A stretch of 64,000 nucleotides of DNA, taken from the NCBI RefSeq assembly GCF_964204645.1, contig NC_134036.1, positions 3,596,001-3,660,000 on the forward strand, written 5' to 3'. The translations under genes were made by a program, and so were the position numbers. The notes below the pieces were generated by a model. It made no database searches and was not told where the DNA came from. It saw only the letters and a program-made list of their open reading frames with translations. This DNA comes from Tubulanus polymorphus (lineage: Eukaryota > Animalia > Nemertea). Shown one piece after another: positions 12,901-46,551 of the stretch (position 1 is the first letter of the stretch; the number at the start of each line of letters is the position of its first letter).

Positions 12901-15900
12901 ACTGGAGCCAGAGTTGGATTAAACCCATACAAATATGGATCTGGATTCAGGGTTAAATTAAACCCGCACAACTGTGGAACTGGGTCTAGTTTCACAAAAC
13001 TCAAATGGTTGTTGTAATTGCTATTGGGTACTTCATGTTTCCAATGAGGCCAACAATTCGAACTTAACTGATTTAAGCTTGGACTTTTTCATGAAACCAG
13101 ATGCTGGGGCACAGTTAAAGTAATCCCACACAACTGTGCAACTTGGTACAGATTCAAATAAATCCCACCAAACTGTAGAGCTGGAGTCAAATTGAACTCA
13201 CATTTCTTTGGAACTGGAGTCAAATTGAAAACCTTTACAAAGTTCTGTGGATCTGGAGTCAAATTGAATACCATACAACTTTGGAACTGGGGTCGAATCG
13301 ACGACATTTACAACTGAAAACCGACGATCGCAGTTGAGTTGTAGTAACAGTATTTCTTCTTTATTCTGTTCAGAGGACACGCTGCGCACGTATCTAGTCG
13401 AAATGGAAAATGACAATCAACACCTGCGACAACGAGTCACCGAATTGGAGGCGTACCTCGGCACGCACAATTCGGAACGAGGCAAAATGGACAAACGCTT
13501 GCGCAACGTCGAAGAACAAAGTCGTAAACTGCAGACGAAGTGTCAGAATTACGAACTGGAAATTCAAGAGTTAAACAGACAGGTAAGCGCAAATCGAGTG
13601 ACAACTTTACCCTATAGATGGCGACCCTGAATGAAAGAAAGATTGTCCACTATTTCCAATAGATGGCCAAATCGTCAGCAACCTTCTCCATTGATATCTT
13701 TACCCTAGATGGCAACACCACGCTTCCCACTAGTTTATTGATACTTCCCTATAGTTGGCAGCACTGTGTTTATTGCTAGATTGTCAAAATTTTGCCATAT
13801 GGATTGCGACACATTGTCTACGTTAATGTACCGTTGTTTGTTGATTGTAGTTGGAAGAGCAGGGAATTCAGATAAAACGAGCGAACAGCGAGAAAAACCG
13901 CATCAAGAATGACTACGAGAACAAATTAGTTGCCAATAATAAACAATGGGAACAAAACCTGGTAAGAGTCAGGATGAGAAATGTCTTATAATTACAACGG
14001 TCTCAGGTGGAGTGCCAAACACATGAAACGTGGATGGTCAGTTTTTGAAAGTGTGCGGATAAAATGTCTAATATCTGGTGTTTGTAGTTCTATTTCTATT
14101 AGAAATATCTCAGGTGAAGCACTTAACACGTGTGAAGTGTGGACGATCAGTTTTTGAAAGCGCGCTGATAAAATGTCTGGTGTTTGTAGTTCATTTTCAA
14201 TTGAAAATGTCTCAGGTGAAGCACTTAACACATGTGAAGTGTGGACGATCAGTTTTTGAAAGCGCGCTGATAAAATGTCTAATGTCTGCTGTTTGTAGTT
14301 CATTTTCAATTGATAATGTCTCAGGTGAAACACTGAACACATTTGAAGTGTGGACGATCAGTTTTTGAAAGCGCGCTGATAAAATGTCTAATGTCTGCTG
14401 TTTGTAGTTCATTTTCAATTGATAATGTCTCAGGTGAAACACTGAACACATTTGAAGTGTGGACGATCAGTTTTTGAAAGCGCGCTGATAAAATGTCTAA
14501 TATCTGGTGTTTGTAGTTCATTTTCAATTTAAAATGTCTCAGGTGAAGCACTTAACACATGTGAAGTGTGGACGATCAGTTTTTGAAAGAGTGCTGATAA
14601 AATGTCTAATATCTGGTGTTTGTAGTTCATTTTCAATAACGTCTTAATAATTTTTTATAACGTTTTAAATTTTTCTGTAAATTGTAGGATGTAGAATTAC
14701 AAAGAATGGAAGAGGAATGTGGATCTCAGATCATGTCTCGTGAACACAAACTGCAATTATTGCGTAACGTACTTGATGTCGGCGCGGTCAGCAGCAGCAG
14801 CGCGACAACAACCCGCTCCGGGCTGATATCAGCGCCGCGGACTCCCCGCGTGCCTCCGCCGGTCGCTCCGAAACCGCACTACACCGGCGGCTCGCGCGGC
14901 GTGACGCCGGCGAAATCGGAGACCGACTTGACGCCGCGTAGTTCGCTGTATTCGCACGGTCGTTTCAGAACGGGCGCGGCGGCGGTGGCGCAGCAACGTA
15001 CGAATACGCCGTACGGCAGTAAACTACGCGCCAAATCTCCACCAGCCAGATCGGTAAGCTTAAAAACCCGAGATAAACATAGTCTTATCGCTTATCTGCT
15101 CTCTCATTCTCTCATGGATAAAATTCAATTGAACCAAATAGTTACAAATTCGTCGATGGAACCACTCCCTGATTTGGCCTTGTGGTTACCATGAATTTCT
15201 AAATACGATGTGTTGTAGGAAGTGCTTTTTATCTAAGGGTTTATTAGCAATAGCTAGCTTTTTGTGTGAGGGTCAGTGTCCTATGCGGCTTTAACTCAGA
15301 CATAAGGTTTAGTTGAGGCTTTCATCCCAGGGAATGCAAACACCTGATAAAGGCGTAATTCATTGGCCGAGACACAAGCTCCTGATTGAATGGGAGATTT
15401 CATTGTTTTCTATTGTATTAGTTCGATTGGTTTTTTCTTCAAATGAATTTTGAAATGTTTCAATGATCGTAAGATAAAAACCCACTATTTACAAATTAAA
15501 AGAAATCGAAAATTTATTAATAAAACAATCTAAAATATAAGAACCTGACGAGTGAACTGTTTCAATGATTGATATTGTATATTTCATGGTAATCTCAGAC
15601 GGCCGCAGCTGTACCGTCACACAATACACGACGCCATCGCAGATCGAGATCGACCGGTGATAATCTCTGGTTGGATCATCGACCTATGGGTACCGTCGAT
15701 ACAGGTATGTACATCCGAAATTGTGAAGCTGGATCGAAAATTTTCGCCTGGAATCCTCCTCTGGTGGTGATCTTCCCTGCAGGAATCGTCAATCCGATCA
15801 GGCAGGATCGTTATAACTCCTTCTAAACTCGTTCTAAACAGAAAATGCTTTTAAAGGTGCTCGAAACTTCTTGAATTTGCGCGAAATGCCCAAAACTCAT

Positions 15901-17312: not shown

Positions 17313-19752
17313 ATGACCGGTCAATATTCAAGCAGCTTTCGACCTGCATTCAAGTGAATGGCGCTGAGAGTGACGCGCAGTTCATCAGAGAAATTGTGAA
17401 AATCGCTCGAGCAATCATCATACAAAAAAAATCAATCGCTCTAATTATATTTACAGTAGACTCCGCCTAACTCTGTGTGCGCTGGTGTCGTAAATCGCTG
17501 CCCTCAAGTCTGCGGTGAATTTTAGTCAAATCTACTTAGAAAAGCCTTCAGCAATTTCTTAACGCTCGCTGAAATATTTACAGTGCCACCAAACCGCTGA
17601 CCAATAAAGGCGCCCTTTAGTGTTATATGTAGTTTCTGAAATCTGTAATCAATCCACGCGGAATGTTGATATCACACCAGATGCTGCGACTATGATTAGC
17701 GAGTAGTGATTAGTGAGTAGTGATTAGTGAGTAGTTTCTACTGATTTTAAGAGTTCAGCTACTATCAAAAATACTCCTCAATCAGAATCGTTTCAGCTAG
17801 TTCATTTTCAATAAATACTAGAGCTGCCAACACTGCTTTCCTGATTTTCAGTATTTGTTGTCGATCCTATAACGACAATTACTGATTTAATTTGGTTTGA
17901 CGCGTACAGAAATATGAATGCTTTAATATGTTGCTGATGGCCCTTTTCAGAGGTTGGCAGCCCCCTGAAATACACAATCTTTAATGTCGAATTACTCTTT
18001 ATTTTCTGGCGAAAACAGCTACGATTATATAGATATCTGGTAGTCTGGTGTGATAAACAGTCAGTGGTGTGTTAATTCTGCCATTGCTTATACAGTACAA
18101 GCTGTTCCACGCTTAATTTAAAATCAAATTTTGTCCATTTACGCCGCAATTAAAATGCTTTCATGATGATATTGGGTGCATGGCGGCTGATTCGGGTCAT
18201 AGAAGGAAATTTTCTCTACCACTTAAGGCATGATAGAAACGAATTTTTACATTGGTCCTTCTTTGTTTCTTGAAACGTGAGAATTAAAAAAAAACTTTGG
18301 TTTTCTCGTGCGAAAAAAAAAAACAAACAAAATTTTTTCGAATTCTCAAGAACGATCAAAACAAAAAAAAATGTGCTGATGTAAAAAGATTCTATAATGC
18401 CTCTAGATGTTTAGTTTGGCCCGAATCAGGTACATGCGCACGTGTCTCTGAAGGGGTGGGTCCGGGGGAAAGTGCGAAGGGTACGCTCCCCCTTTCCCTA
18501 AAAAATGTCAAAAATATTGAAATCATAACTGTAAAGTTATCCATTTCCAAAAATGAGTTAATATTTTCCGATGAGCTTTCTTTTTCCGAGTGCCCTTGTA
18601 ATTATATGATATGATATACCGCTATTGTGGGGGTGCTCACCTCCCTGAATCAGACCCTAAATCCACTCCACCCTATCCCACCCGCTCTGTTTCGTAATTG
18701 TAAATAATGTACATGTATATATTTTGTATGTTTGTTCGATCTTGTCTCAGTGTAACTGCGCGTGTTACTACAGGTCTATCTGGTAGTCGCTGCCGCTTTG
18801 CTAGCATTTAATATTGTAATTATACTATATTTTCATCATATTTATAACTATTTTATTTACATTCGCGAATAAAGGCAAGAAATGCAAATTCAAGTTTTAA
18901 AAAGGCGTCCGTTCGTCGGTACAGGTGTTTTTATAGTCGCAATTGGGATTTCGTTACTTTCGCTGAATAGGTTTTCGACTCTGTTGCACCCGTATTGGTG
19001 GTCACATGCACACAAGTGATCTCCATGGCAGACGGACCCTCTGAAGTCAATCCCTTACGTCTGGCTAGTCTTCAGCATAATTGGTTGACGTTGACGTCTC
19101 GTGCAGGATTTGGTTTCGTAGAAGAAAAACTTAAATGTATGACCTTTCGGGCAAACGAAATCTATCGCAATCCAATCCCCTGAAGGACATGACGTACCCG
19201 ACATTAGAACATGGATCTACTACCGTTTAGGAATCAATACACCCGGGTCAAGTTTTACGAAAAATCTAAACTCAAAATTTGGTGTCATCGCTTGCTATTG
19301 GTTACTTCACATTGTCAATGAAGACAACAATTCAAACTTAACTGATTTAAACTTTAAACTTGTTCATGAAACCGGACCTTGACATTCGATAATGGTACAT
19401 TTGAGACAACCGAGGAAATGGCTGCGGATTGATTCCTACGAATTTCTCGGCAGCCTTTCGATTCCCATCGATTCCATTTGCCAATATAGCGTCAAGAGGA
19501 ACGGTGTGAATGGAAAACTAACGACAACATTCAGGGTTCTAACGGATCAGGGGATCTCAGATATGTCGGGAATTTGAATTTTTGCTTTCTCGTTTTTGTT
19601 GGCGTCGAGCGGGACAAGAAACCTCTCGATAAGAAGCGGCCACTGAAAGGACATCTTATAAAGTAATTGGGAGAATATTTGGTCAAAGCTCCGTGGAAAA
19701 TGGAAATTTTCGATTACCCTTATCAGCAGGACCCCCGAGTATTGAAGCAACA

Positions 19753-22700
19753 ATGCGAGGGTGAGTTCTTTTGTATATTATGTTTTACTTAAGATCGTAT
19801 ATATACACCTATATGGTGCATTGATAAGAAAGTATATATAAGGGGTTAACTCCTTCCGTTTCAACGAGTGTTCGACAAGCATACGGTTAAGCTGTTCAGA
19901 TGCAGCAGGTCAAAATGACAGTTCAGTTGACCGGTGATAGCTCTTTTGTCGCCAACTGTAGATGCGCAACATCTGGGCCGCGTCAATCATTGAAATGAAG
20001 TCATTCGGTCGGACGTAATCTCGCGCGGGCCGGTTGTTGACAATCTACCCTTTACAAATAGCGCCATAAACGCTGTTAAGAGCGTATACGAAAGGATTCC
20101 TACCGAACACCCCGAACCATGAAAACGATAGCGAGGTAAGCGTTAGGCCATGAATTACTAAAAAGAATATATATAAGGATCGACGGTTAGAAAGAAGGGA
20201 GATAATACTGAATGACCGGTAGAGATTGATATCAATGTAAATTATTTCATCAGTCATAATGCCATCCTGTTTAACGCCAACATTTTTCAGGAAATAAGTT
20301 TGCCCATTCTAACTAAAATTCGATGAAAATACCATTCTTAATAACGTCATGTTATCCATTGGTCCGAGCAGCGGTATTATACAGACACAATAAGAAAGCT
20401 GTTCACATAAGATATTTATTTCTAAAAGTTCTGTGGTGATCAGTATTCCTTGAGTATACTTGAATATCAGGACCGAAACGTCACTCAATAATTCATCAAC
20501 TGCCACCTTCACTGTTCGTCTTTCCGGAATTCTTCTTACGCGTTCATCTTATACAGAAATTGTCTATCATCGCGGCCTAACACTAATATTAATTCATACT
20601 ATTGATAGTCATGTACGTAGCTTACAAAATACAGAACAACCAATTTAAGAATTAGACCACCTCCTTAGAATTAGACCACCTCCTTTTTGAATTGCACTGG
20701 CTACCTCTGTACACAAACGAGTGAGTTCAAGGCAGTTTTATTGGTTTTTAAAGCATTAAATGGTCTTTCCCCTCTGTGTATTAAAGAAATGCTGTCTCTT
20801 CATAGACCTAGTCGATGTCTTAGATCTACAAATCAAGTTATTCTGTCTCATGTACCTTTTAATACAATTTTTTACGGTGAAAGAGCTTTTGCTTGGGCTG
20901 CTACAATTTTATGGAAATATCTGCCCTCTTATTTGCGCAGTTGCACAGATATTGATGAATTTAAATCGGGTGTGAAAACCTACCTTTTTAAACAAAATTT
21001 ATTGAAATGTAATATGATTATGTGTATATCTTAAGTAAACCGCTCTAAGACGCAGTGGAGAGCGGTATAGAAATAAATGTTATTATTATTATTATTATTA
21101 GTCGGTAAAACATCTATTTTCGAGGAAAACCCTTCAAAGGACTTGCCGAAAACATGTATTCAAATTTCAGAAGGTTCTCTAAGTAATTTAAGTTGGGATT
21201 GGCATATACTAAAAGCGAAATAAGGTCAAATAAAAACGTTGAACTCACAATAGAAAATGAGAAGAAATTTACCGCAGTTCTGGTAATTTGGAAAATGTTT
21301 GAATAGCGAAGCGATTGTAAAAAAACCTCGACGATCGAATCCCATCCGTTTCCGAAGCTACACGCCAGTCTTTCGGTGCCATCGTTTTGCAGCTAGGCCT
21401 ACGACTTGTTTTCTAAAAGCCAGTTATGTTTTTGATAATTTGTGGTATAGGTTTATTATCGCTATGTTGGTGATCGAAGCCACGATCAGAAATCTGAAAA
21501 CATTCGCAGACATTAACGAAGGTGAGTCTTGTATACCTCAGGGGCCTGTTGCGCAGTCATGACATGAATCTAAGACCATTGTCTAAGACAAGCTTTATAG
21601 GTTTATAGCCAAACTGATAACTGAAGACCAGTTTTGAGATTTAAGATCACTTTTGGACTTAAGTCACGACTGCGCAATTGGGCCCAGGATAATGATAACG
21701 GTATATAAACTCCTCAAAATTTCATTTCGATCTCGGTATCAACCGAATGATTAAGTTAAAGGAAACATGATATATTCAAAAAAGTCCCCGATAATCTTTT
21801 GATGTTTGTTCGCCTCTGTTTTTGTGAATGTACAGAAGTACGAACGCAAGTGATGCACGTTAAACTTAGCCTCGACGAAGAGTTTGATCCCGATTTAAAA
21901 AACAGCGCATCGGTCGCGTACACGAATATGCAGAGAGAAATGGAATCGGCTGTAAGTGTTTCTCGACAACTCGTCAAAAATGCCTCTGTCAAGGGTATCT
22001 TTCCGGGGGCGGATCTAAGGGTTGCGCACCCCCACTAGTATTATGATTTGCCGTGATATGCAAATTAGATAAGCAAAGAACCGCGTGTAAAAATCCACAA
22101 AATTTGTTTATCCATTCATCAATTTATTCCTTCAATTTACTTCTCGCCAATTTACAATTATAGTTCGAAACACGATTTAGTAAAGAGTTCGCCCTGATCA
22201 GGAAAAAGAACTACTTGATTGCTCTTATTTCTAGCTCGACGAATTGATAGAAACGAAGAACTTTCAATGGTACATTGGAGTTAGAATCACAGGCTTTAGG
22301 TATTCGAATATCTAGATAGTTTTTATTTTACTAAACATTAGGCTAAAATGTAATGATTACTTTGTTTCTCCTAATCGGCCGGGTTGCCTTTTGTAAACTG
22401 CAATGACATTTGTAATCAGTTCATTTCTATATAACTGCCAGGTCTGTTATTGTTTGATTTTTAAATTAAGTAATGTACAAGGTAGATAGACGGCCGCCCT
22501 GGTTAACTTTTAAGCTCAGCTGAAATGAGAAACAAAGTATCAAGGTATTTTAGCCCTATTAGTTGCATTGATAATCGGCGTCGTTCCGTTTTTTTTTGTC
22601 AGTGAAGGCAGTACCATAGTCAATTTCGTAACGATCGTCAATTTAAGAATCTTGGAAAACAACCCGAACATGAACCCGGCTAGCGACTTTATTGACGACG

Positions 22701-25700
22701 TTATAAAGCCTGAATTCGGAGACGCGACGAAAAATATTGCAGGTCACGCCCTCAACGGGCAGTATAACGTACAGGAAAATACGTGTAAGTTCCACGGATA
22801 TCGGCCTTCGAAGAACAACTATAAGAGAGCATCGAGGTTTCTAATCGATGCTCGTGAAAATGGTTCGAAAGTTAAATGTTTTCTCCTTTTATCCCCTTTA
22901 CTTACTTATTTTACCCGCACGATATTTTCCAGTGGAGAAATTAGAGTTGAAGGACGAGAACGGTCTGTATAGAACGCAAGAAGAAGTTTGGCTCGAGAAT
23001 CCGGAAGAATTTCGAAAACACGAAGAAAGTATCTTAGGTAAAAATAAACGATAGAAAGAACTGACGTAATAAAAAGATTGTCACCATCGAACCAGGAAAG
23101 CTTTCACTCGCTATTCAAGCTTCGAATGATATTTGATGCTAATTTCTTCTCCCGTTTCAGAATCTCATAAATGCGATGTAAGTCTGAAGGCGATACAAAT
23201 TATTTTATCATTTCATTTTCGACCCCCAATTAACCTAATCATTTGCGGTACGTTATGTTACATTCTGATCATGCAGGAAGGGAATACCGAATGCGACGTC
23301 GAACCGAGGAGAAATTGGTGCATCGATTTAGCAGGAACGACGAGATGTGTTTACCCACCAGGTAGATATCCGAATATCTGAATATGCGATTTCATCCCAA
23401 ATTTCTGGTCCGTGTGCTCGTCTGCCCAGGAATAGTAAGGCTAGAAATTTCAGTTGCACAGTCACGACATAAAAATAAGTTTGGTCTTACTGGTCGTAAG
23501 TCTAAGCCATGACTATTCAACCGGCCCCTGATTCTAAGGATGACTAATCTTGCAAAATACATGCATCATTCATTTCCTATAAAGAAATTATGATTTTTCC
23601 AAGATGCACGCATATAATTTCCAATATCTACGTGTATATTTAAGTTAAGACTTCTGTTTTTCGTTCACACCCGACGATGATCTCTAGGGTGAGATCGAAA
23701 CGTCGTGTCTTATTTTTTGAATAAATAAATTCTCGATTTTAAAATTCTTTTAAATCGTGCACAGAGGTTTTTATCTTATTACCCGTTCTCCACGTTTGAG
23801 TGTGGTTATTTATTGTACTATTTTGTTTGTTTTTTTCAGGTGTAACTATCTGCAGCGTAAGTAAATTTGTTACGGTATGAATAGTGTTGAATGTCCGAGG
23901 GGGTGCAGGCTCCAGGCTGTAGCAGATTGATACCTGCAATTATAGCTGGGACCCTTTTCGATTTTCTCCGATACGAGGCCTATCACCGAACACGGAACAT
24001 TTTCCATATAACATCATAGTTACGATAAACTAACATTATTTAGTTAATCGTGTATTGCAACACACACGATCTGTCTTTATGCTTTTCAGTTCGATCCTTG
24101 TTTGCTCGATCGACACGACTGTAAAGTGCACGATCATGACAGATATAAAGCTCAATGCGTGGATAGTGGCAACAGTAAGAATATTGTTCAAAGTGGCCAA
24201 CGATTTCTTTCGAGAGTCTCTTTAAAAATCTACCCTTCCCGGAGAAACTTGGTCCAGTTCCGCAGTTCCGAGTTAAGATTTAACTCTGAGAGTTAACTCA
24301 TTGAAAATGAACTCTAACTTTAACTTTAACTCTAACTCAGAGCTGTGGAACTGGACCCAGAAACTGGCTTTTAGTTACAGTAACAGGGAAATCGAGTCGA
24401 AGTCGAGAACGACCTTCTGTCTAGAAATAAATGCAGCAATCAATCATTTAGAAAGATTTTAGAAAGGAATTTCGGTGGTCATTAATCTTGAAATGGGTTA
24501 CGAACATTTTGCTTTGTATATCAGACGTCCTGACATCCTCGAAATTGTCTGTTATTTTGAATTTTTACCGCAGAAGCCGAGATTATCACCATCGCATATC
24601 ATGGGATTCACGCTAGTAAAGGTAAAGCATATATACGTGGCTATAGTGTAAAGGATTCTTAAAATCGTTTCGACTGAAATTCGTGAAATCTAAAACGAAC
24701 GCAGCCAAATATTCATTAAATATCAATATATACGATCTAAGTTCTGTCCATCATTCTTCAGAAAATGGTAAATAATTGCAATCTATAATTTCTATTTCAG
24801 GGCAACCTTCATGCGACGTAAGTACATACCACGGTCGATCTGTTCGGTTTTGTCGAAACGAGTACAAACTGCGGAATACTTGAACTTTTGAATTATACGC
24901 GCATTTCAGGATGACCCGGATCCGTGTTTGGCCTTCGCGCCGCAAGTTTGCATCCCTACCGACGACGGTATCAAGTGTGGCTTCAGAGAAGGTGAGCGTG
25001 ATTATGCGTACACGAAATCGACTGAAAAAGGGTCTAGGATCATGAGCGCTGAAAGTGCATTTGGGGGTCCGCACATCAAATTGAAAATTTAATTCATGTT
25101 CCGTCTTTTACTTTGCAGGGGAAACGATCTGCGATGTAAGTTGCATGACGCGTGGAGTGATCATTCTGGACTCCATTCTATCAGAACATTCAATCTGCTT
25201 GTAGAATTCTACTAAAATTATCAAATTAAAAAGAAAATTCCTTATAGTCCTTATACTGCGTGTTGTCATGCACATCTCGATTTGCAGTAACTTTTGTAAA
25301 GGTTGTGTTTATCTTAATTTTCAATCTCATGATTTGCAAAGAATTTTTTCCATTTCTCCCATCTTCATCACAATTTTCATTCCATTTTATTATTTTTTTT
25401 CCGCACTCCTTCCAAGCCTTTGTGTAAAATACTCGCACAATAAAAAAAATTCTACAAACTTCTATTCTTATTTTTCCCTCGTCCATTTTGAAATACATAT
25501 TATAAGAAAAATTAGTTCTACTTTTCCCGTAACCCTCCAATTTTTTTCTTGAAAGAATCCGTGCTCCAAGTAATTAGAATAAAGGCCTTAGACAGAATAT
25601 CTGAAGCTATATTTTGTTTGCAGCACCATATTTGCGATGCAGGCCTCGAATGTAGACTAGTCAACGGTAGCACGAACCAAGCCCAGTGCTATGACGTAAA

Positions 25701-28700
25701 GCGTAAGTTGTCTTTATCACTTTGCTAAGTCGTTCCCGTATATGTTCATGCTTCATCAAATAGTTCAATTATACGAACGATTTTGTTTTTGTTTCGTTTA
25801 GATCCCAATGACACTCGCAATTTGCGACAGAATGGTAGGTACCGCGTACTAGAAAACAAATATTATTTGTCGTCTGAAGTTCGATGCAGGTCTTTCGTAA
25901 ACAATAAACCTCGACACACACTTTCATCGTCTGAAAATCCGATTCTTTTTCATTTTTCAGTTGGAGTCATTGACGTTGGTAAGCTCTACATTCCGTTGAA
26001 GTTAATGTACCGTTAAAATCGATGAGATACAAACGTTTTCAGGCCGCAACGAAATGAACATACATTCTAAAGATAGGCCTAAAGTTTATTTTACTTTTTC
26101 TATCATTTTCATATTTCATAATCGCTAACTTTGTTTTCAGTCGTGCCGTCCTGTAAGGTAAGACCAATTTAAAAAAGAAATCCCGTTGAGCAAATCGTTG
26201 TACATGTACATGTATACGATGCGTCACCATTTTCATTTGTAATCTTGTACAAAGCTTTGTGACTAGACCGATACACAAATACGCATGTTCGGCTAAGATT
26301 ATAGAGAATATTTAGGTCGAAAAATACTTAAAAAAGAGATGATTGGTGAACGCAAAATTCCATTCAGTGAATACGCATTTTGATAAAAATGTTCTTGAAA
26401 AAGAAGTCACAAATTTTAAGAATGTTCATAAGTAATGTGTCAAGATAGAGGCTTAGATCGGGCAGTTAGTCATCTAAAATGTAATGAAAAATAAAGGATT
26501 TATCGCGCGCTTCGTTATTTAGGACAAACCTGATCCATGCGAGAATGAAAAACCCCTTTCCTGTATACAAGAAATAGATGGCTACAGATGTGATTTTCTA
26601 GAAGGTGTGTTATTTCTTCCGCATCTCATCTACGTCGTTTCACCGGATTTTTTCTTCGTCTCTGCTCCGTTGGAAGTTTTCAAAAAAGTTTCAGTTCTCC
26701 TCTTCTTTGCGGCAGTCATGGATATCATTTTTCTATTCATCAACCGCATGTTCCCCCCAGTCCTCAAGTGTGGGTCGTGCGTTTTCTTCGTAATAATCTC
26801 ATTCGCCTAGAACACCTGTGGTAAATCAGACACTAAGGTTCTCGGCGAACAACCGAGAAGTCGAATATCCCAATGTTTGTTTAGGTGTCGGTGTTTTTTC
26901 CACTTCGTCATCATCATTTTGAGGCGTTCATTGCAGCCCTCATATAGCACTGGAGTTTTATGCTGCAATTCCATTTATTTCCACGAGTTTGTATAAAATA
27001 ACGCGATGATTACTAATAAACTATGTCCATAATATGAAGTGGCTCGGGTAAAATTGAAGGGAGGCAAATATAAAAAAAGAATTTCATACGTCCTATGATA
27101 TTGTTTTGGATTCAGTAGTCTACAAGTTGGCTGAAAAAAATTATTCGTGGAGTTTTGATGGTGGTTTTGATATAATTCTTTTTTTCTTCATTATGTATAG
27201 GAGAAAACATGTGTACTGTAAGTAGCCTCGTAAATTATGAAGATATTTTGTCTCGATTATTATCACGATTAACCTGCAATGAGAAAGAAATTAAAACATG
27301 TTGATAATTACAACAAATGATAATCTTGAGAGTTTAAGACCAAACTGATTATGGTTCCTGCCGAGTCTTCGAGGTTTAATGGGATTTGGGTAGTGTACCG
27401 AATAACGAGGCATGAGTTGGACGAAGAGTAGAAATAGTTAAATTCGTATGCTTATCATGTTTTCGAACCGCGTGAAACTAGCTTATCTGCCACTACCTTA
27501 CTTACCGCTGGAACTACCGATACATAAAACCTTGATCGAAGTTTTGCCTGTATGTCCAGATTAAGGGGAAAAAGTTTTTCTTAGTTTTTGAAATGCAACG
27601 AAGAGGCAGGAGAGGTGTGCCAACTGTTGAATGGAAATGCCCACGACGGTATGTGTGGACTACCGAGAGGTAAGTTGTTTGTAAGTTCCGAATGATCAAC
27701 AGTATTCAATTCAAACTGCATAGGCTTTCGAAATCTGGATCCATTTCCATCGATAAAATCAGCCGATATATTTCCTAAGAGTGTTATTTGACCGGTAACT
27801 ATGGAATTTGAGCCTTGCTTTATCCTACGAATTATTGGACATCTTTTTTTGTTTGTCGTCATCAAAATACCGTTTACAGAATTCTATTTTCTAATTCAAA
27901 TTGGAAACCGTTGATTGCTAAGTATATAAGAATCATAGCCACCCAGTGGCTTCTAGTATTCTCTGCAATTTGCACACGCTTCTTAATTGCCGAAATATTT
28001 CCAAACAAATTTTGCATATTGTAGATTCCGCCAACCTTACGTATATACTGAACGATTCTGATGAAAGTAAGTAAAATTGAACACGTTGTTCAGGCTAGAA
28101 AAATTGATACCTTGTTTCTCCTTCCTGCTGAGCTTTTAAAAAAGCTTTCAAGAGTCTATCTACCCTGTATATTACTATTTTATAACAAAATCAGGATCAT
28201 GCTAAGCACAACAGACCCGGGAGCTATAGAAATGAATTGATTACAAATTTTATTGCGATTTACTAGAATGACCCGGCCGATCAGGAGCAACAAGGTATCA
28301 TGTTTTAGTCTTATGTTTACATATTTCTTTTTTCCTTTTTTTCACATCTCTTTACGCCACTTCCTGTCTCGATTATCGTATTCTTAATTGCAGTTATGAC
28401 CTTGGAAATGGATCTCGAGAAAGAGGAAGAAGGTCAGTGCTAGCTCTGATTTGATTTTATTTCGATCCGAGGTTTGCCACCTGTATCTCAGTACACCATC
28501 GCTTATAATTCTTGTAGTCATTGTCTTCATTATTTTCATATTTTCAGTAAAGGATTGTAATGTGAGTATTGTAATGTGAGTATCCTCACCTTTGTACGGG
28601 GACGAACGCGAAAAAACCCATCGGAAACATCAAGCAGAAAAAGTTCCACGAAAAAGAAGTTATCCCAAAATAGGCTGTATGGAAAAATAATGGAAACTAA

Positions 28701-31700
28701 GGCAGCTTCGGTTTTATTCGCATTTATTCCGATTTTCTAGACCCCTTCGAATTCGTCTTCCTTTAAGCTTCGCTTCTTATGGAAAATTTAGAAGTACTTA
28801 TTTCTGTATGAGTTAATAGAGATTAAAGTACCGTTTCATTTTCTACTAGAAATTACTCTTCACAATACGCAAGAAATTGTATAGCTTTCTTTTTTAAACG
28901 ATTTTTGAGAAAATACATGATAAATTTGTTAGAAAATTTTATCAATTTGCAAAAAACCATTGATGACGTAAATAAACATGAATTAACCTTGCTATATCTG
29001 GACGTGCGGTCGAAGCGACAATTGATTTGAAGTGACGATTCTCGAATTTTACGATTGATTTCAGGATGATCCAACCATATGCAACACGCCTTTATCTTGT
29101 GTTCGGGTAAGGGGTAAATACACGTGCGGATTTAGACCAGGTAAATATAAGTATTTGTTTAGGCATAGGCAATAAATGTACATCGGCAGTGAATGCAGTT
29201 TCTAGCCTGACGTTACTTAAAAGTAAACAGCGCAGAATCAACTGCAATTCGATGTAAATATTCTTGCGAATATATCTGAAATTAGTTTTTCACATTTTCC
29301 TTTTTCAGGAGAGAATATTTGCAGCGTAGGTGAACACGGGGAAATTTCCTTCATCGCAAAACAAGAGAAAAAGAAATCTAAGTTCATTTAACTCATCACC
29401 GTTTGTCTCAGATTATTTATTGAATTTCATTTTTTTCCAGACACAATTTACTAACTGTAAACCCCCATCTATATGCGTGCTTATCAATCACGACCCGTAC
29501 AGAGCGTTGTGCCAGGCACCAGTAGGTAAGGTGGATTACGTTGCAGATCTCAATAATAGGATCTTAATTTTCTGTATATCGTTCATGGCATTTTTATATC
29601 TAATCTATAACCTGTAAAATGTGTCGTCACAAATCCCACGATAAGAATAGAACAGAATAGTCCAAAATGCATCGACGAGCTAGGCGTTCATTCAAAGTTA
29701 TCCTTCCCGAAGGATTACCTGGAAAAAGTCGAAATAAACCAGCAGCTCAAGGGCCAAACATTTTCGGACTCAAACTTTCCATAACATCCAATTTTCCGTC
29801 TATTCCTACTATTGCTACAACGCGGACATTGTTTCTTCAATGTTTAAAACCCCGTACCATTCGTATTTCAGTTGAAAAAGGCCCAGTGAGCATCATCATC
29901 GAAGATGGCGATGACGGTAAGTAGTTCCCTCGTGAAATCGAGTCACGTCACTAAGCGGTGCGTCTATGTTTGAGTTCAAAATTGTATACGTATTTCCAAT
30001 TCAATTAAGTCGCCATTTGGATACGTCGTCGACATAATGATTGTCACGAATACGCCGACTTAAGAAGCAAGTTTGACCGTAGCAAATGACAGTGACTGTT
30101 AGACACCTCCGTGTTGAGTCACTATATAGGGTCATCAATTATAGAACGTCAAATCAGCAAATTGTTATATATATATATATACATTGTGATTTACAGGTGA
30201 AATCATGCACTTCCAAATTCACTCGCCAAACGGTAAGCAGTAGATATTTTTCTAATGTAAAACGTGAATAGAAAATACTCAAATGTAAAAAAAAATAAAA
30301 TAACGTCTATACATTGTATCATCGTCAATTTCAGGAAGCGAAAGCTGTGAGGTAATGTATAGTGCAGATCACTTTTTAATTTGTGATGATATCCACGACG
30401 GTCGCATCTAGATAGACGAATCAAAATCTCGTCCTTTTTCAGAACAACGAAAGCATTTGTCCATCCCCGCTGTCCTGCGTACAAGACGTTAATGGGAACT
30501 ACAGTTGCGATCTGAAAGAAGGTAAGTTCCTGCCCTGGATGACTATGCCTTAAAGTATGAAACCGAGACATAGACTCATCCTCCCTCGCAGGATATACGT
30601 AGGCCTTTTAGCACCGTGAGATGAAACCTTAAGCTTGAATGCATGCTTTACTACGCTTGGCAGAATCATAATTCATGTTGATGACATACTTGTCATGTAG
30701 AACTCGATTCTCCACAGTCTATACCGCCATATGTTCCTCTACTTTTAGGTGAAGACATGTGCAAAGTACGTAGAAGGTCAGGGTGATACTGATCGACACA
30801 TGAGACTCGAGTTGGTTTTCGTAACATCTGTTCGATGGCCACGCGCCACATTCGGATTCTAATCCATCGCCTATCATTTCAGTTGGGGTACACCGAATGC
30901 GAGCCACCACACGTTTGTAAACTGATTGATGATGATCCACTGAAAGCGGTTTGTGAACCTGGCGACGTCGATCTAGGTAATGCTAAATTTGAAATATGAA
31001 CACATTACTGAGGTCCCCGCACAAGCTCATACCGAGTACAATCTGAATAAATATAATATTCCTGGATTATTGGAAAGTATATGTTCCTTACGGTTCGGGA
31101 ATACTAAATCGAATTGGGCATTGTGGATTTATTGAACGAAGAATTCAAGAGTCAGGTTCAAATTAATGGTAGCCCAACCTTTTACTCTGGTGCTGTGCAT
31201 ATTAATGATTCAACTACAATGCAGAACTTTGTTTTAATGGCCTCATACATTGCCTAAAACTTTACGAGCGCTACAAGTAAATTATGTATAAACATGTCTG
31301 AAATGTCTCTAATTCATCGTCATCGTTTGACAGATACGCAGAGTGATCTACCGACGAGTGACGACTACTGTAACGGAGTAAGTATAGGGTTAAAAGCCAG
31401 TCCACTCCTTACTTATGGCTCATGATGAGTCCAGAAGACAAAGATGAATCTAAAGATGAGTCTAAAGATGAATATGAAAGAAATCCCATAATAATACAGC
31501 CAAAGATGTTAACACTGGTGATGGCTATTATAGTTTATACCCGAAAGCCCCGAATATTGTATATACACTTTTACTCAAGACTACATCTTTGGCTGAATCA
31601 TCGTGGAATTTCTGTCGTATTATGGCACATATGCTAAGAGTCTACTGAGCGACTGATGAGCGAATATGAAATTTCGTAATTGTTTATTTTCAGAAAGACG

Positions 31701-32066
31701 TTTGTCCACCGCATTACCAATGCGAACCGGCCGATCCGTTCCATTCCAACTGTTCGATGACCTGGACGTGAGCAATAACGAACTAGCGCTTAACTCTCTA
31801 TCCATTTCTTTTTTTCTTAGTTTAGCTTTGGCTACGCTGTCACGATATCCTTTTTACATTTAAGGCCGACCGGGAAGACTCTGTTATTGGTGAGATGGAT
31901 GGAAGACGCGATACTGCAAAAGAAAATCGGCCGCGACGCGTTCGTAGCCGAAAGATTCGCCCAGCTTTTTGGTGATGACAACGCCGATTCGGATGACGTT
32001 CCCACGTCCACCAACGGGAACGATATTGCTAGCAAGTTGGAAAGCGAAGCAGTAAGGGACAAATAA
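19753..32066 (+). CDS. Probable secreted protein: signal-like N-terminus + SEA domain + 11 four-Cys (follistatin-N/EGF-like) modules; 36 exons, ~708 aa
   Basis: In-frame GT-AG exons: 19753-19760, 21451-21521, 21836-21951, 22235-22299, 22603-22784, 22933-23037, 23161-23177, 23277-23361, 23840-23856, 24090-24174, 24574-24621, 24801-24817, 24910-24991, 25119-25135, 25624-25702, 25802-25834, 25961-25978, 26141-26157, 26523-26604, 27201-27217, 27585-27669, 28025-28066, 28394-28432, 28548-28561, 29065-29140, 29309-29325, 29441-29525, 29872-29916, 30197-30232, 30335-30351, 30443-30521, 30749-30765, 30883-30976, 31334-31377, 31694-31767, 31865-32066 (sum 2127 nt, no internal stop). N-terminus MRGFIIAMLVIEATI; SEA hallmarks FDPDLKNSASVAYTNMQREMESAL and ITGFSEGSTIVNF. 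TATAAA at 19657, AATAAA at 32181. Confidence 0.85.
20665..21100 (+). mobile_element. 5'-truncated L2/CR1-group LINE 3' end
   Basis: Reads LHWLP then, after a frameshift, FKAVLLVFKALNGLSP...RPSRCLRS...YGERAFAWAATILWKYLP..LR.....EFKSGVKTYLF, the typical L2 ORF2 C-terminus. It is followed by a stem-loop (21039-21066), AATAAA and a (TTA)n tail. Confidence 0.85.
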
Positions 32067-33382
32067 ATTTGGCGTAACGTGATGACTACTGCTCTGTTGA
32101 CTACTATTATTCTTCATTGTATTAGAATATTCTATTTTTGCTTCTTAAGCCGAGTCATACATATTGTGATATGATGTAGAAATAAAATTACGTTCTAGTT
32201 TCATGGAAAAGTTTAAGCTTTAAATGGTTAGGTTGGAATTGTTTGCCTACAATTGGAAATGTGAAGCAACCAATTGTATTTATACCAAAGTTTGCGTGTA
32301 ACTTTTTCTCATCGAATATACATATATGCTATGTGCTGTATTCGTGCTTATAACTATAATGTTAAAATCCCACAATACAAAAGAGAGTGTTACTACGAGT
32401 CAAAGGTTTCTTTAATTAAGGTATGAATAATATTTGATTCGATGTTTCCACTCGATCAGTTATCGTTACACTCTTATAAATAACAGTGACCGGGGCGGTT
32501 TTATCAGAACCACGAAAGCAGCTCGGCTGTATTGCAAATCTGCCACCCTTCGTATCGACAGCTATTGTTCTTCATCGTTTTTCGGCTTTTTTCCATTGTA
32601 TTATCGCATGGACCCATTGTTTTAGCGCGGTTTGATCGTTGAAATTGTATACTCCTCATCGGGTTCGAAAAACGGCATATCGTATTAATGATTACCGATG
32701 ATATAACATTGGTATCGTCTTTTCTTGGGAACTTCTTTGTTTAAATCGAATATCCGCTTGATATTGGAAATTATATTTCAGAGTATTTTCTTCGACTTAA
32801 AAGTAGGATCCGCCCTTGAACGGATGCGGTAACACCCGACGTACGGGAAATCTAAACGTATTGTCTTGTGTACGATATAAGATCGAACCACATATTCTTT
32901 TCAATTATTCTTTACCAAATTCGTAAATTAGACACATTTGGATGAGTTAAACAGAAAAGATAAATCAAAACCAGACGCAAAGTTAGTGAATCGGCTTCAT
33001 AAACGAATGTCCAGGTTTTTTTTGAAGTTGGTAACTACTTTCCCAGTACTCTTATGCTATAACATAGATGCATCATTCTGCGCATGGATAGCGTGCATTT
33101 CTCACATATTGATTCGGATCTGGTTTACAGATATAAAGATATGAAATATTGTACGTTATGGAATATTGTAATGGTAGGGTAGATTTCGCTTCACCGAAAT
33201 TGCAGGATTGGAAACTATTCATCAACTCAGTCTTCAAGTTCTCGGCGTCAGTTTGACTCAGTAATGCAGTTGGCGTCTGATCAACCGCTATATAGTATCT
33301 TGAGGATTTATCAATACTTGGAACGCATGTTGCTTTAAGTTCTGCTGCGTTCCTCGACCAAGCAGTGGTGCAACCTGAATTG

Positions 33383-34498
33383 ATGACTTCACTAAATGCG
33401 TCGGTCGGTACTGAAATACTTTACTCCAACCATTCGGGCATAGCAACCACCACTGAGAAGGCATGGTTTAAACCTCATTCGCGGTGTAAATACATCCATC
33501 ACGCCGATTACAATCCGTTTCACGTGAATCTGTATATACAGATCACTACTTACGTCGTTTTCAGCATCGCCATCTTCGGTTTGATGGCGAATTCATTGTC
33601 TTTTATCATCCTCAGTAAAGAACGTTCGAACAACACCAGTATATTCTATTTGAGATGTTTGGCTGTTGCGGACATGTTTATTTGTTTGTCTTATATTGTA
33701 TTTGACTTTCAGTATCGGCTCTACATGCACACGCTGTTACTGGACATGACTGCTGAAATAAACCACGCTATGAAGCGCATGTATTCATACACTCAAGACA
33801 TTCGATTTTTGTTTTCAAGTATCAGTGACCTGATAACATTGTTAATAGCAATAGACAGATATATCGTTGTTTGTTGGCCTCTGAAAGCTGTCAGAATTAT
33901 AACCATGAGAAAGAGTTGTATCTTGGTCACTTTTTGTGTGATAATTTCTGCCTGTAATCATTGTAAGAGTGTTTTCAAGTATTATAACTATCGTTCCCGT
34001 AATCCGTGCACTGGACACGAAAGATGGAATCAGAAATTCACTCCATTTGCTAAAAATATTTATTTGAAATACTACGACGTATTTGTCCGCGCTCCTATAT
34101 TTACTATAATCCCGACAGTGATAGTAGTTCTAATAACTATCCGATTGATTTTCACGTTGAGACGCGCAGGAGCAGCGAGAAAAACGATGTCTACAAATCA
34201 TCAAACTTCTAACAGCAGCAGCAGCAGCAGTGACCGTAGTTTAACTCTGACGTTAGTTCTCATCTCTAGTTTGTATTTATTGAAGAATGCATTGTCTGTC
34301 CGAGCCTCCATCGTCAACTTGATAAAAACTTTAGGTGGTTCACTCGGTAAAGGCATTTCTCACGTTTATATGAACCCAGTTGGGGCCATCGGAAGAATGA
34401 TTGTATCATCTTGTAATTTCGTCGTTTATTGCGCTTCGAGGCGTCGCTTTCGAAATCAACTGAAAGCGATGTTTTCGGTTAAGAAGTGTCAAATCTGA
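33383..34498 (+). CDS. Rhodopsin-class peptide-receptor-like GPCR (FMRFamide receptor/Srw-like), array copy 1
   Basis: Seven hydrophobic segments, GLMAN, LAVAD, IDRY, NFVVY, helix-8 FRNQL; N-terminal sequons; ATG 33383. Confidence 0.9.
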   Translation: MTSLNASVGTEILYSNHSGIATTTEKAWFKPHSRCKYIHHADYNPFHVNLYIQITTYVVFSIAIFGLMANSLSFIILSKERSNNTSIFYLRCLAVADMFICLSYIVFDFQYRLYMHTLLLDMTAEINHAMKRMYSYTQDIRFLFSSISDLITLLIAIDRYIVVCWPLKAVRIITMRKSCILVTFCVIISACNHCKSVFKYYNYRSRNPCTGHERWNQKFTPFAKNIYLKYYDVFVRAPIFTIIPTVIVVLITIRLIFTLRRAGAARKTMSTNHQTSNSSSSSSDRSLTLTLVLISSLYLLKNALSVRASIVNLIKTLGGSLGKGISHVYMNPVGAIGRMIVSSCNFVVYCASRRRFRNQLKAMFSVKKCQI

Positions 34499-35622
34499 TA
34501 CATTCAATTCTTACAAGCTTTCGATATTTCTTATTTTCAATAATCACATTTCAATGGTTACTTCTATTCATGAACATTCGCCTCTTACAGTTCATTAGAT
34601 GTTTATCTTAAAGCGAAATAAGAAGAAAAGAACTGCTTATTTATTAATTACGATATTGAAATATCGAAACATAATCTACTGTCATAGATAAAATACTCGT
34701 TGCTTAATCCCTAAATATAGACAAAATGCCTAGTCCACATTTCATATGAGCCAGTTCCACAATCAACCGCAACCAACTACAGAAGACTAACTACAGATCT
34801 GGACCCAGTTCCACAGTTGTCAGTTAGAGTTAACTGTGAGTTAAAGTTAGTTCATTTTCAATGTTTTAACCCAGAGTCAAATCTTAACTCAGAACTGTGG
34901 ATTTGGACCCTGCTTTAAAACTACATTCGTAAACACTATACAACGTTTTTTTCATCAATTTCTATATAAACTCGAATCAAATTTCCGAGTCTTAAGAATT
35001 CCGAATAATGACTTCAGATTATGATTCAAACCTAACGATTTTATTCACTGACGTTGTGATCAACGCTGGCGCTATATGACGTCATATCGGTGGTTATTTT
35101 ATCGGTTCTTGAGACGTGACGTCCAAATACGCCGTATACCTATTATCACGTGACTACAGCCGGCACAAATACTACGAGACCAGTATATAATATGCATACT
35201 GTATCATTACACGCGTGTCTTCCTGGATTGTTCTAAATTTCACGTAATATAACATCATTTTCATTTTTCATTGATGCGATTAAAAAGCTATTACTTTTTA
35301 GGTGAAATGCGTATATTTTTGCTATTGGAATTTTGTCATCAATGCGACTAACTCCGTATAGTAAAAAACTCACCAACAAACATTGATTGATTTCGTTAAT
35401 GTATAAACATCTCCCTGAGGCATATTAGGTTTTGAAGGACTGCAATTCATAGATTTCTCATCTCTCAGACTCAGTGTTCATTTGACTCAGCAGTTTGGCT
35501 GTCTGGTGGGTCGTTCTATAGCGAGCAATATTCTTAATCGCTCATAACTAAAATGCGACTGTTTGCAATGTTTGGAAGTTTAAGTCCTCGATTTCAAAAA
35601 GAAGATTCTTCAAACTGAATTG

Positions 35623-36768
35623 ATGGCCGCGCAAAATGTATCGGTTGGTGCAGGGAACTTTACCGCCAACACCACAGGAGTGACAACCACAACTGAGAAG
35701 GCATTGTTTAAACCTCATTCGCGGTGTAAATACATCCATCACGCCGATTATAAACCGTTTCACGTAAATCTGTTTCTGCAGATAACTACTTACGTCGTTT
35801 TCAGCATCGCCATCTTCGGTTTGATGGCGAATTCATTGTCTTTTATAATTCTCAGCAAAGAACGTTCGAACAACACTAGTATATTCTATTTGAGATGTTT
35901 GACCGTTGCGGACATGTTTATTTGTTTGTCTTGTGTCGTATTTGACTTCCAGTATGGGCTCTACAGTCACACGCTGTTACTGGACATGACTGCTGAAATA
36001 AACCACGTTATGAAGCGCATGCATATATATACTCAACACATTCGAAAAGTTTTTTCAAGTATCAGTGACCTGATAACATTGTTAATAGCAATAGACAGAT
36101 ATGTAGTTGTTTGTTGGCCTCTGAAAGCTATCAGAATCATAAGCATCAAGAAAAGCCATATCAACGTCACTATTGTTGTAATAATTTCTCTTTGCAACCA
36201 GTCTAGAGAATTTTTCTTGTACTATAACCATCGTTCCCGTAATCCGTGCACTGGACACGAAAGATGGAATCGGAAATTCACTCCATTTGCTAAAAACATT
36301 TATTTGAAATACTATGGCGTGTTTGTCCGGGCTCCTATATTTACTATAATCCCGACAGTGATAGTGGTTCTGATAACTATCCGATTGATTTTCACGTTGA
36401 GACGCGCAGGAGCAGCGAGAAAAACTATGTCTACAAATAATCAAACTTCTAACAGCAGCAGTAGTAGCAGCAGCGGCAGCAGCAGCAGCAGCAGCAGCAG
36501 TGACCGTAGTTTAACTCTGACGTTAATTCTCATTTCATGTTTCTATTTATTGAAGAATGCATTGTCTGTTCGAGCTTCCATCGTCAACTTGATACAAACT
36601 CTCGGCGGTTCACTCGGTAAAGGTATTTCTCATGTTTATATGAACCCAGTTGTGGACATCGTAAGAATGATTGTATCATCTTGTAATTTCGTCATTTATT
36701 GCGCTTCGAGGTGTCGCTTTCGAAATCAACTGAAAGCGATGTTTTCGATTAAGAAGTGTCAAATCTGA
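35623..36768 (+). CDS. GPCR array copy 2
   Basis: Intact ORF with the same motifs; ICL3 tract S7-G-S8. Confidence 0.9.
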   Translation: MAAQNVSVGAGNFTANTTGVTTTTEKALFKPHSRCKYIHHADYKPFHVNLFLQITTYVVFSIAIFGLMANSLSFIILSKERSNNTSIFYLRCLTVADMFICLSCVVFDFQYGLYSHTLLLDMTAEINHVMKRMHIYTQHIRKVFSSISDLITLLIAIDRYVVVCWPLKAIRIISIKKSHINVTIVVIISLCNQSREFFLYYNHRSRNPCTGHERWNRKFTPFAKNIYLKYYGVFVRAPIFTIIPTVIVVLITIRLIFTLRRAGAARKTMSTNNQTSNSSSSSSSGSSSSSSSSDRSLTLTLILISCFYLLKNALSVRASIVNLIQTLGGSLGKGISHVYMNPVVDIVRMIVSSCNFVIYCASRCRFRNQLKAMFSIKKCQI

Positions 36769-37901
36769 TACGTTCAGTTCTAACAAGCTTTCGATATTTC
36801 TTATCTTCAAGAATCACATTTCAATGGTTACTTCTATTCATGAACATTCGCCTCTTACAGTTCATTAGAGGTTTATCTTAAAGCGAAATAAGAAGAAAAG
36901 AACTGCTTATTTATTAATTACGATATTGAAATATCGAAACATAATCTACTGTCATAGATAAAATACTCGTTTTTAATCCCTAAATATAGACAAAATGCCT
37001 AGTCCACATTTCATATGAGCCAGTTCCACAATCAACCGCAACCAACTACAGAAGACTAACTACAGATCTGGACCCAGTTCCACAGTTGTCAGTTAGAGTT
37101 AACTGTGAGTTAAAGTTAGTTCATTTACAATATTTTAACCCAGAGTCAAATCTTAACTCAGAACTGTGGATTTGGACCCTGCTTTAAAACTACATTCGTA
37201 AACACTATACAACGTTTTTTTTCATCAATTTCTATATAAACTCGAATCAAATTTCCGAATCTTAAGAATTCCGAATAATGACTTCAGATTATGATTCAAA
37301 CCTAACGATTTTATTCACTGACGTTGTGATCAACGCTGGCACGATACGACGTCATATCGGTGGTTATTTTATCGGTTCTTGAGACGTTACGTCCAAATAC
37401 GCCGTATACCTATTATCACGTGACTACAGCCGGCACAAATACTACGAGACCAGTATATAATATGCATACTGTATCATTACACGCGTGTCTTCCTGGATCG
37501 TTCTAAATTTCACGTAATATAACATTATTTTCATTTTTCATTGATGCGATTAAAAAGTCTATTACTTTTTAGGTGAAATGCGTATATTTTTGCTATTGGA
37601 ATTTTGTCATCAATGCGACTAACTCCGTATAGTAAAAAACTCACCAACAAACATTGATTGATTTCGTTAATGTATAAACATCTCCCTGAGGCATATTAGG
37701 TTTTGAAGGACTGCAATTCATAGATTTCTCATCTCTCAGACTCAGTGTTCATTTGACTCAGCAATTTGGCTGTCTGGTGGGTCGTTCTATAGCGAGCAAT
37801 ATTCTTAATCGCTCATAACTAAAATGCGACTGTTTGCAATGTTTGAAAGTTTGGAAGTTTGAGTCCTCGATTTCAAAAAGTAGATTCTTCAAACTGAATT
37901 G

Positions 37902-39014
37902 ATGGCCGCGCAAAATGTATCGGTTGGTGCAGGGAACTTTACCGCCAACACCACAGGAGTGACAACCACAACTGAGAAGGCATTGTTTAAACCTCATTCG
38001 CGGTGTAAATACATCCATCACGCCGATTATAAACCGTTTCACGTAAATCTGTTTCTACAGATCACTACTTACGTCGTTTTCAGCATCGCCATCTTCGGTT
38101 TGATGGCGAATTCATTGTCTTTTATAATTCTCAGCAAAGAACGTTCGAACAACACTAGTATATTCTATTTGAGAGGTTTGGCCGTTGCGGACATGTTTAT
38201 TTGTTTGTCTTGTGTCGTATTTGACTTCCAGTATGGGCTCTACAGTCACACGCTGTTACTGGACATGACTGCTGAAATAAACCACGTTATGAAGCGCATG
38301 CATATATATACTCAACACATTCGAAAAGTTTTTTCAAGTATCAGTGACCTGATAACATTGTTAATAGCAATAGACAGATATGTAGTTGTTTGTTGGCCTC
38401 TGAAAGCTATCAGAATCATAAGCATCAAGAAAAGCCATATCAACGTCACTATTGTTGTAATAATTTCTCTTTGCAACCAGTCTAGAGAATTTTTCTTGTA
38501 CTATAACCATCGTTCCCGTAATCCGTGCACTGGACACGAAAGATGGAATCGGAAATTCACTCCATTTGCTAAAAACATTTATTTGAAATACTATGGCGTG
38601 TTTGTCCGCGCTCCTATATTTACTATAATCCCGACAGTGATAGTAGTTCTGATAACTATCCGATTGATTTTCACGTTGAGACGCGCAGGAGCAGCGAGAA
38701 AAACAATGTCTACAAATAATCAAACTTCTAACAGCAGCAGCAGCAGTGACCGTAGTTTAACTCTGACATTAATTCTAATTTCATGTTTCTATTTATTGAA
38801 GAATGCATTGTCTGTTCGAGCCTCCATCGTCAACTTGATAAAAACTCTCGGCGGTTCACTCGGTAAAGGCATTTCTCACGTTTATATGAACCCAGTTATG
38901 GACATCGTAAGAATGATTGTATCATCTTGTAATTTCGTCATTTATTGCGCTTCGAGGCGTCGCTTTCGAAATCAACTGAAAGCGATGTTTTCGATTAAGA
39001 AATACCAAATCTGA
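37902..39014 (+). CDS. GPCR array copy 3
   Basis: Intact ORF, nearly identical to copy 2, including the upstream spacer. Confidence 0.9.
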   Translation: MAAQNVSVGAGNFTANTTGVTTTTEKALFKPHSRCKYIHHADYKPFHVNLFLQITTYVVFSIAIFGLMANSLSFIILSKERSNNTSIFYLRGLAVADMFICLSCVVFDFQYGLYSHTLLLDMTAEINHVMKRMHIYTQHIRKVFSSISDLITLLIAIDRYVVVCWPLKAIRIISIKKSHINVTIVVIISLCNQSREFFLYYNHRSRNPCTGHERWNRKFTPFAKNIYLKYYGVFVRAPIFTIIPTVIVVLITIRLIFTLRRAGAARKTMSTNNQTSNSSSSSDRSLTLTLILISCFYLLKNALSVRASIVNLIKTLGGSLGKGISHVYMNPVMDIVRMIVSSCNFVIYCASRRRFRNQLKAMFSIKKYQI

Positions 39015-46239: not shown

Positions 46240-46275
<36 letters not shown>

Positions 46276-46551
46276 GACCGTAGTTTAACTTTGACGTTAA
46301 TTCTCATTTCATGTTTCTATTTATTGAAGAATGCATTGTCTGTTCGAGCCTCCATCGTAAATTTAATAAAAACTTTAGGCGGTACACTCGGTAAAGGTAA
46401 TGCACATGTTTACATGAACCCAGTTTTTGATACCTTAAGAATGATCGTAGCCTCTACTAATTTCGTCATCTATTGCGCTTCGAGGCGTCGCTTTCGAAAT
46501 CAACTGAAAGCGATGTTTTCGATTAAGAAATACCAAATTCAATTCAATTGA
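45418..46551 (+). CDS. GPCR array copy 6 (mosaic)
   Basis: Intact ORF; ICL3 tract S11. Confidence 0.9.

Follow-up and report, generated by a model that had tools for sequence, protein, structure and literature searches.

In a 64-kb stretch of DNA from Tubulanus polymorphus (contig 12, positions 3596001-3660000, of an assembly of 268 Mb; hereafter the window), we detected a long chain of short exons on the forward strand. It is probably an intact single-copy gene for an extracellular, mucin-related protein in which small cysteine-rich modules, split by micro-exons, stand behind a SEA domain. The encoded protein would begin with an N-terminal part and a divergent SEA domain, continue through five super-repeats (each made of a type A module, a type B module and a Cys-free linker) and an eleventh module, and end in an acidic tail. 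The novelty of such a protein is modest, SEA domains and two-disulfide EGF-like hairpins being known building blocks that are paired also in a giant mucin on contig 9 of the same genome. The noteworthy part is the gene layout, which is unusual: a regular array of ten obligatory micro-exons whose lengths are not multiples of three (non-3n).

The chain from 23161 to 31767 (+) comprises 29 exons, all bordered by AG and GT and consistent in phase, that join to 459 codons with no stop and 44 Cys, four for each of the 11 modules (Table 1). A pattern scan and coordinate-based translation located ten micro-exons in it, nine of 17 nucleotides (nt) and one of 14 nt, with the borders, phases and translations that the first-pass annotation of this DNA had given them. 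Every micro-exon is in phase 1->0, is preceded by a pyrimidine tract and AG, runs into a GT donor (in most cases GTAAGT or close to it) and supplies the first Cys of its module in its second-to-last codon. An intron of 91-503 nt separates each from an exon of 76-94 nt in phase 0->1 with exactly three Cys; these exons, and the alternation of two module types along the chain, had also been proposed and were confirmed by translation. The ten exons of 14-17 nt carry only a Gly-x-x-x-Cys-x loop. The residues of the B-type micro-exons are type-specific: Gly comes first, then Glu (in the first of them Val), a variable residue, Ile/Met and Cys, a pattern that would fit selection on the micro-exons themselves.

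Modules of type A space their Cys as Cx6, Cx5-8 and Cx8-9, those of type B as Cx4 or Cx6, then Cx5-7, then Cx11, and the last Cys of an A module and the first Cys of the following B module are always 8 residues apart. Cys-free linker exons (phase 1->1) follow the A-B pairs, one after the first pair and two after each of the next three. The first-pass annotation had assigned one or two linkers to every pair, which holds for the first four; the linker residues of the fifth pair sit inside the 44-nt first exon of the eleventh module. The intron of the eleventh module falls two codons past Cys1, that of the other modules one codon past. Every module and every super-repeat runs in phase 1->1, and the super-repeats measure 84, 82, 94, 91 and about 78 codons.

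Table 1. Exons of the micro-exon gene in the window (position 1 is the first letter of the window)
Feature	Position	Strand	Exons and phases
Exon S0, candidate, N-terminal to SEA	21422-21521	+	Phase ?->1; open frame and donor; in-frame ATG 21464
Exon S1, first part of SEA	21836-21951	+	Phase 1->0; Pfam SEA and mucin-SEA profile
Exon S2, middle of SEA	22235-22299	+	Phase 0->2; frame and splice sites
Exon S3, second half of SEA	22603-22784	+	Phase 2->1; begins at the Gly-Ser motif
Exon S4, end of SEA and link to first module	22933-23037	+	Phase 1->1
Super-repeat 1	23161-24621	+	Micro-exon 23161-77, A 23277-361, micro-exon 23840-56, B 24090-174, linker 24574-621
Super-repeat 2	24801-25978	+	Micro-exon 24801-17, A 24910-91, micro-exon 25119-35, B 25624-702, linkers 25802-34, 25961-78
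Super-repeat 3	26141-28432	+	Micro-exon 26141-57, A 26523-604, micro-exon 27201-17, B 27585-669, linkers 28025-66, 28394-432
Super-repeat 4	28548-30232	+	14-nt micro-exon 28548-61, A 29065-140, micro-exon 29309-25, B 29441-525, linkers 29872-916, 30197-232
Super-repeat 5	30335-30976	+	Micro-exon 30335-51, A 30443-521, micro-exon 30749-65, B 30883-976
Module 11	31334-31767	+	44-nt exon 31334-77 (linker residues and first Cys), exon 31694-767 (three Cys)
Probable last coding exon, acidic tail	31865-32066	+	66 codons (31865-32063), stop TAA 32064-66

Chance does not account for the micro-exons. We scanned for a pyrimidine tract, AG, 17 nt of open frame with Cys at the right codon, and GTR; the window, at 128 kb for the two strands together, had nine matches, all of them within the gene. 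Shuffling the region 500 times gave 0.078 matches on average and never more than 2. A chance origin of the pattern is excluded. Skipping any one of the ten micro-exons brings a stop within 1-45 codons, and read-through from a micro-exon into its own intron does so within 9-72 codons. Because their lengths are not multiples of three, the micro-exons have to be included constitutively. With the neighbouring receptor genes as training set, codon usage scores best in the proposed frame for nearly every exon piece tested and for the whole chain. The flanks of the micro-exons have only the splice signals and the Cys codon in common, both of which are invariant, and intron similarity among the units was not detectable. 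Since the introns lack similarity while the layout is kept, the five units are old duplicates in which the layout has been maintained.

The eleventh module and the acidic tail of the first-pass annotation are both present, and the tail is open and coding-like: its exon scores +13.7 bits in the frame set by the donor at 31767, beyond the 99th percentile of intron pieces, and the frame stops at TGA 31769-71 if that donor is left unused. DNA runs that reach the TAA stop of the tail show it unaltered. The claim that the protein has neither a Kazal domain nor a membrane segment also stands, the Kazal part being absent and no membrane segment being found from the stop to the next gene. On the plus strand of 19000-33400 we found no Pro/Thr/Ser-rich exon and no membrane segment, the features of a membrane-tethered SEA mucin. 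The total of 2127 nt proposed for the coding sequence was not reproduced exactly, because the 5' end is not placed. Directly 3' of the TAA and in the same frame lies an open stretch of 35 codons (32067-32171, +) with a hydrophobic run that resembles a membrane segment; it is probably a T-rich 3' untranslated region.

Family and homologue searches were made with single exons, and the joined chain was used only for the counts of frame, stops and Cys and for the codon score. Upstream of the first micro-exon, exons S1-S4 join in phase to it (S4 gives the base that makes the first micro-exon begin with Glu) and are best read as a divergent SEA domain, on weak but convergent evidence from differing tests that agree and fall in the right order along the domain. 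The Pfam SEA profile (PF01390) aligned its positions 4-35 (of 106) to S1 at E=0.016, the 15.7 bits falling short of the cut-off of 26.4, and S3 alone had no Pfam match. S3 starts with Gly-Ser-Thr-Ile-Val, a putative Gly-Ser motif of the self-cleavage type that SEA domains carry at the turn from the second strand to the third. Among named ESM Atlas clusters, the three closest to S3 belong to SEA families, which at a score of 0.80 is no more than a lead. Profiles built from the SEA halves of the contig-9 mucin ranked S3 (E=0.022) and S1 (E=0.21) first among 1200 open segments of the window. A genome-wide SEA search scored 13 candidates, and this locus was absent from them. The candidate exon S0, ahead of S1, has a codon score of +7.3 bits in the proposed frame only.

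Several candidates for the 5' start of the gene were considered and rejected: a poly-Leu ATG at 21077, which belongs to the (ATT)n tail of a retroelement-like fragment; a signal-anchor-like open reading frame (ORF) at 18882-18989, which offers only phase-2 donors; and an ATG at 19700, which lacks a hydrophobic part. The retroelement-like ORF fragment itself (20675-21100, +), which has no Pfam match, presumably lies in the first intron or in the upstream region.

Searches beyond the locus returned little. A profile of the eleven three-Cys exons found only this locus in the 268-Mb genome, and the modules appear to be single-copy in it. Searched with phmmer against 1.84 billion representative proteins, S3 returned only two spurious repeat proteins; a metagenome scan found nothing for the SEA exon, PDB searches with S1 and S3 found nothing, and a B exon searched in the Atlas had no usable match. 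A weak paralogue of S3 was detected on contig 9 (HMMER E=0.09), and a BLASTP comparison of S3 with the SEA piece there was negative. The lack of a true homologue of S3 in that protein library and of a copy of the modules elsewhere in the genome agrees with the suggestion in the first-pass annotation that the protein may be lineage-specific.

The same annotation had likened the Cys spacing to that of the FOLN module. The spacing is indeed of the FOLN or truncated-EGF kind, but Pfam FOLN (PF09289), applied exon by exon, did not match the eleven three-Cys exons at E<=10, these exons being scored without their separately encoded first Cys, and a genome-wide FOLN search gave matches at other loci only. 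The modules have four Cys and lack the Cys-x-Cys that would hold a fifth, as well as a Kazal half, and so differ from FOLN; they also differ from canonical EGF domains, which have six Cys with Cys-x-Cys, and Pfam EGF families matched none of the exons when these were searched one by one. The HMMER check on SEA, FOLN and EGF that had been proposed thus ended, for single exons, with the one SEA match on S1 under its cut-off and none for the other two; the SEA domain itself is retained on the convergent tests of S1-S4. Run against PDB, the module profile had its best match in a four-module piece of avian CREMP (9pgb) at a non-significant E=1.2, and the number of Cys, the module size and the tandem order are those of the CREMP/DPY class.

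Some observations weigh against an intact gene for a mucin-related protein. Every family match falls under its curated threshold, and neither the protein library nor the metagenomes gave a homologue outside this genome that would show conservation. The searches addressed single exons. For the species there is one small run that may be RNA, and it has no reads over 26200-32199, which is evidence neither way. No in-phase signal peptide or start codon was placed in the 5' region: the proposed signal-peptide check, done as a sequence scan of the upstream region, found none in phase with the 5' exons of the gene, and a good look-alike, ATG 21426 with 13 hydrophobic codons (21426-21470, +), is one base out of frame with S0. 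This look-alike could be a chance match or an upstream ORF, or could point to a one-base length error or variant. It adjoins a T5 run (21429-21433). If the run differed in length by one base, ATG 21426 would come into frame with S0 and provide a Met start, though no clear signal peptide; a one-base change farther on, ahead of 21470, would link the signal-like peptide with S0 instead.

The unplaced 5' end also bears on how far the gene extends. It is possible, if doubtful, that the chain is part of a larger or different gene whose 5' exons are missing (encoding a signal anchor, a mucin stretch or further domains), or that phase 1->1 cassettes are spliced to give length variants. The signal-anchor-like ORF at 18882-18989, though in the wrong phase, would suit such a gene, as would the phase 1->1 of every module and super-repeat and the fact that the contig-9 relative is a huge membrane mucin; however, there is no Ser/Thr-rich or in-phase hydrophobic exon between the upstream coiled-coil gene and S0, and no membrane segment ahead of the next gene. 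A different question is whether the four-Cys module is the right unit. From the last Cys of A to the first of B there are exactly 8 residues, with a conserved Gly between, and the spacing from B to A is long and variable, as if an A module and the following B module made up one eight-Cys domain (laminin-type EGF-like or another larger Cys-rich fold). We regard this as unlikely, since the Cys-x-Cys of EGF and laminin-EGF domains is missing from both types, the eleventh module stands alone, and the module profiles match single hairpins in the contig-9 mucin and in CREMP, though weakly.

A silent locus, either a relic or merely a gene-like pattern, would agree with the lack of a transcript match (one small possible RNA run, 26200-32199), of an annotated protein or a homologue among the 1.84 billion library proteins, and of a start codon that leads into a signal peptide. 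Frame, splice sites and all 44 Cys codons are nevertheless kept over more than 33 consecutive exons beside introns that have diverged beyond recognition, and the pattern scan and shuffles exclude a chance origin, which makes silence very improbable.

We therefore prefer an intact gene for an extracellular, mucin-related protein. In such a protein each module would be a four-Cys, two-disulfide hairpin of the truncated-EGF/FOLN-like class, likely with the pairing Cys1-Cys3 and Cys2-Cys4 by analogy with related modules. Eleven disulfide-locked hairpins and short strand-like linkers would form an extended chain behind the SEA domain, and the protein, if expressed and secreted, may serve as a component of a matrix, a surface coat or an adhesive, to judge by its kinds of domain.

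The layout points to a history in two rounds. The phase-0 intron after Cys1 would already have been present in the ancestral module, before the duplications; a doubling of the module would have given types A and B, and the A-B-linker unit would then have multiplied to five, the intron being copied each time. Because modules and units are in phase 1->1, whole ones can be duplicated or skipped without a break of the frame. The introns are short (91-596 nt), which would let each splice be recognised across the intron. With introns of this size, a 17-nt exon could plausibly be recognised even without special factors.

If transcribed as modelled, the gene would be a very clean case of ten obligatory non-3n micro-exons in one gene, each with a structurally essential Cys. 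It would also make a test case for annotation, as gene finders and spliced aligners blind to exons of 17 nt would shorten the protein or shift its frame, and an evolutionary example of an intron within a shuffled phase 1-1 module that was copied through two rounds of duplication. A far more speculative proposal, to which we give little credence, is that the protein is lineage-restricted, its modules being 'locked' by the non-3n micro-exons so that each could be kept or left out only as a pair of micro-exon and main exon, and that regulated splicing of such pairs gives rods of graded length from a single gene. Were this so, pairwise splicing would be a route to structural variants distinct from the skipping of symmetric exons in the micro-exon genes (MEGs) of schistosomes.

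The remaining features of the locus touch these points only at the edges. In super-repeat 4, a perfect 14-nt tandem duplication (28554-28581, +) spans the donor of the 14-nt micro-exon and the last bases of that exon, and creates a second donor 14 nt downstream whose use would break the frame. The intron separating the two linker exons of super-repeat 3 contains a high-copy repeat (28100-28300), with a contig depth 50-70x that of its surroundings and many loose ends. An exon candidate in this repeat (28267-28294) was rejected, as it also brings a stop. ORFs on the opposite strand within the gene had no family match. Three DNA-like runs agree with the assembly across 26200-32199. Another sample, also seen in DNA runs, carries a double change at 31339 and 31341, which turns a Gln codon into an Asp codon in the linker part of the 44-nt exon, and a synonymous variant at 31871 within the tail exon.

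The window is animal DNA by its G+C content of about 38-40%, its short GT-AG introns and the adjoining tandem single-exon genes for rhodopsin-type receptors. Exons of an apparently unrelated gene for a coiled-coil protein (many coiled-coil Pfam matches) lie upstream at 13334-15194 (+). Downstream, at 33365-46551 (+), are the tandem single-exon rhodopsin-family receptor genes, six near-identical copies that match Pfam 7tm_1, and two further genes of this family are found at 54269-58450 (-), one of them apparently split into two ORFs.

SEA domains that adjoin EGF-like Cys modules are a theme of the mucins MUC3/12/13/17 and of agrin, and IMPG1/2 are among the SEA/EGF surface proteins. The architecture, which the first-pass annotation did not recognise, is less alien in the light of this theme, of the contig-9 mucin and of the described CREMP/DPY/Sp185 class. 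The contig-9 gene (G000:C9:2504000-2532500, minus strand, loci L015-L018), found via the weak SEA paralogue, encodes a giant membrane mucin. In each of its repeated units a SEA domain with Gly-Ser-Val precedes a Cx5Cx5Cx11C module, and a Ser/Thr-rich exon with 770-3300 codons completes the unit. Its last part has a SEA domain with a Gly-Ser-Thr-Ile-Val motif, followed by EGF-like modules and a membrane segment, and closes with a short tail. As in our gene, SEA adjoins small Cys modules; the Cx5Cx5Cx11C module after each SEA resembles type B, and the last SEA carries Gly-Ser-Thr-Ile-Val as S3 does. The Cys modules of this mucin are the top, though weak, matches of our module profile in that 40-kb region. 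They are unsplit and lie in large exons, whereas the modules described here are split by micro-exons. Unlike SEA mucins, moreover, the present gene has eleven A/B-alternating modules, and neither a Ser/Thr-rich region nor a membrane segment was found in it.

Two-disulfide modules that resemble an EGF domain minus its last disulfide, and that pair Cys1-Cys3 and Cys2-Cys4, occur in tandem in avian CREMP, in Drosophila Dumpy (the DPY module) and in Chironomus Sp185, and CREMP modules are sometimes annotated as FOLN (bioRxiv 10.1101/2025.09.16.676614). The modules described here share with these proteins the tandem order of four-Cys modules of ~25-30 residues and the two alternating spacer lengths. 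They differ from CREMP in that its spacing is a strict Cx4Cx5Cx8C, compared with Cx4-6, Cx5-8 and Cx8-11 here, and in that its partner domain is VWD/C8 and not SEA; the sequence similarity is not significant. FOLN shares the Cx4Cx5C start and the long hairpin loop, which are clearest in the second B module, but has the fifth Cys (in Cys-x-Cys) and the Kazal half that are absent here.

Closest in gene layout are the MEGs of Schistosoma, which likewise consist largely of very short exons, encode putatively secreted proteins and are easily mis-annotated (bioRxiv 10.1101/2023.06.21.545858). The exons of these genes are symmetric (multiples of three), and exon skipping yields variants (bioRxiv 10.1101/2023.06.21.545858). 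In contrast, the micro-exons described here are 17 or 14 nt long, are in phase 1->0 and cannot be skipped alone, which sets the gene apart from the MEGs. They also alternate with exons of 76-94 nt and encode a structural Cys.

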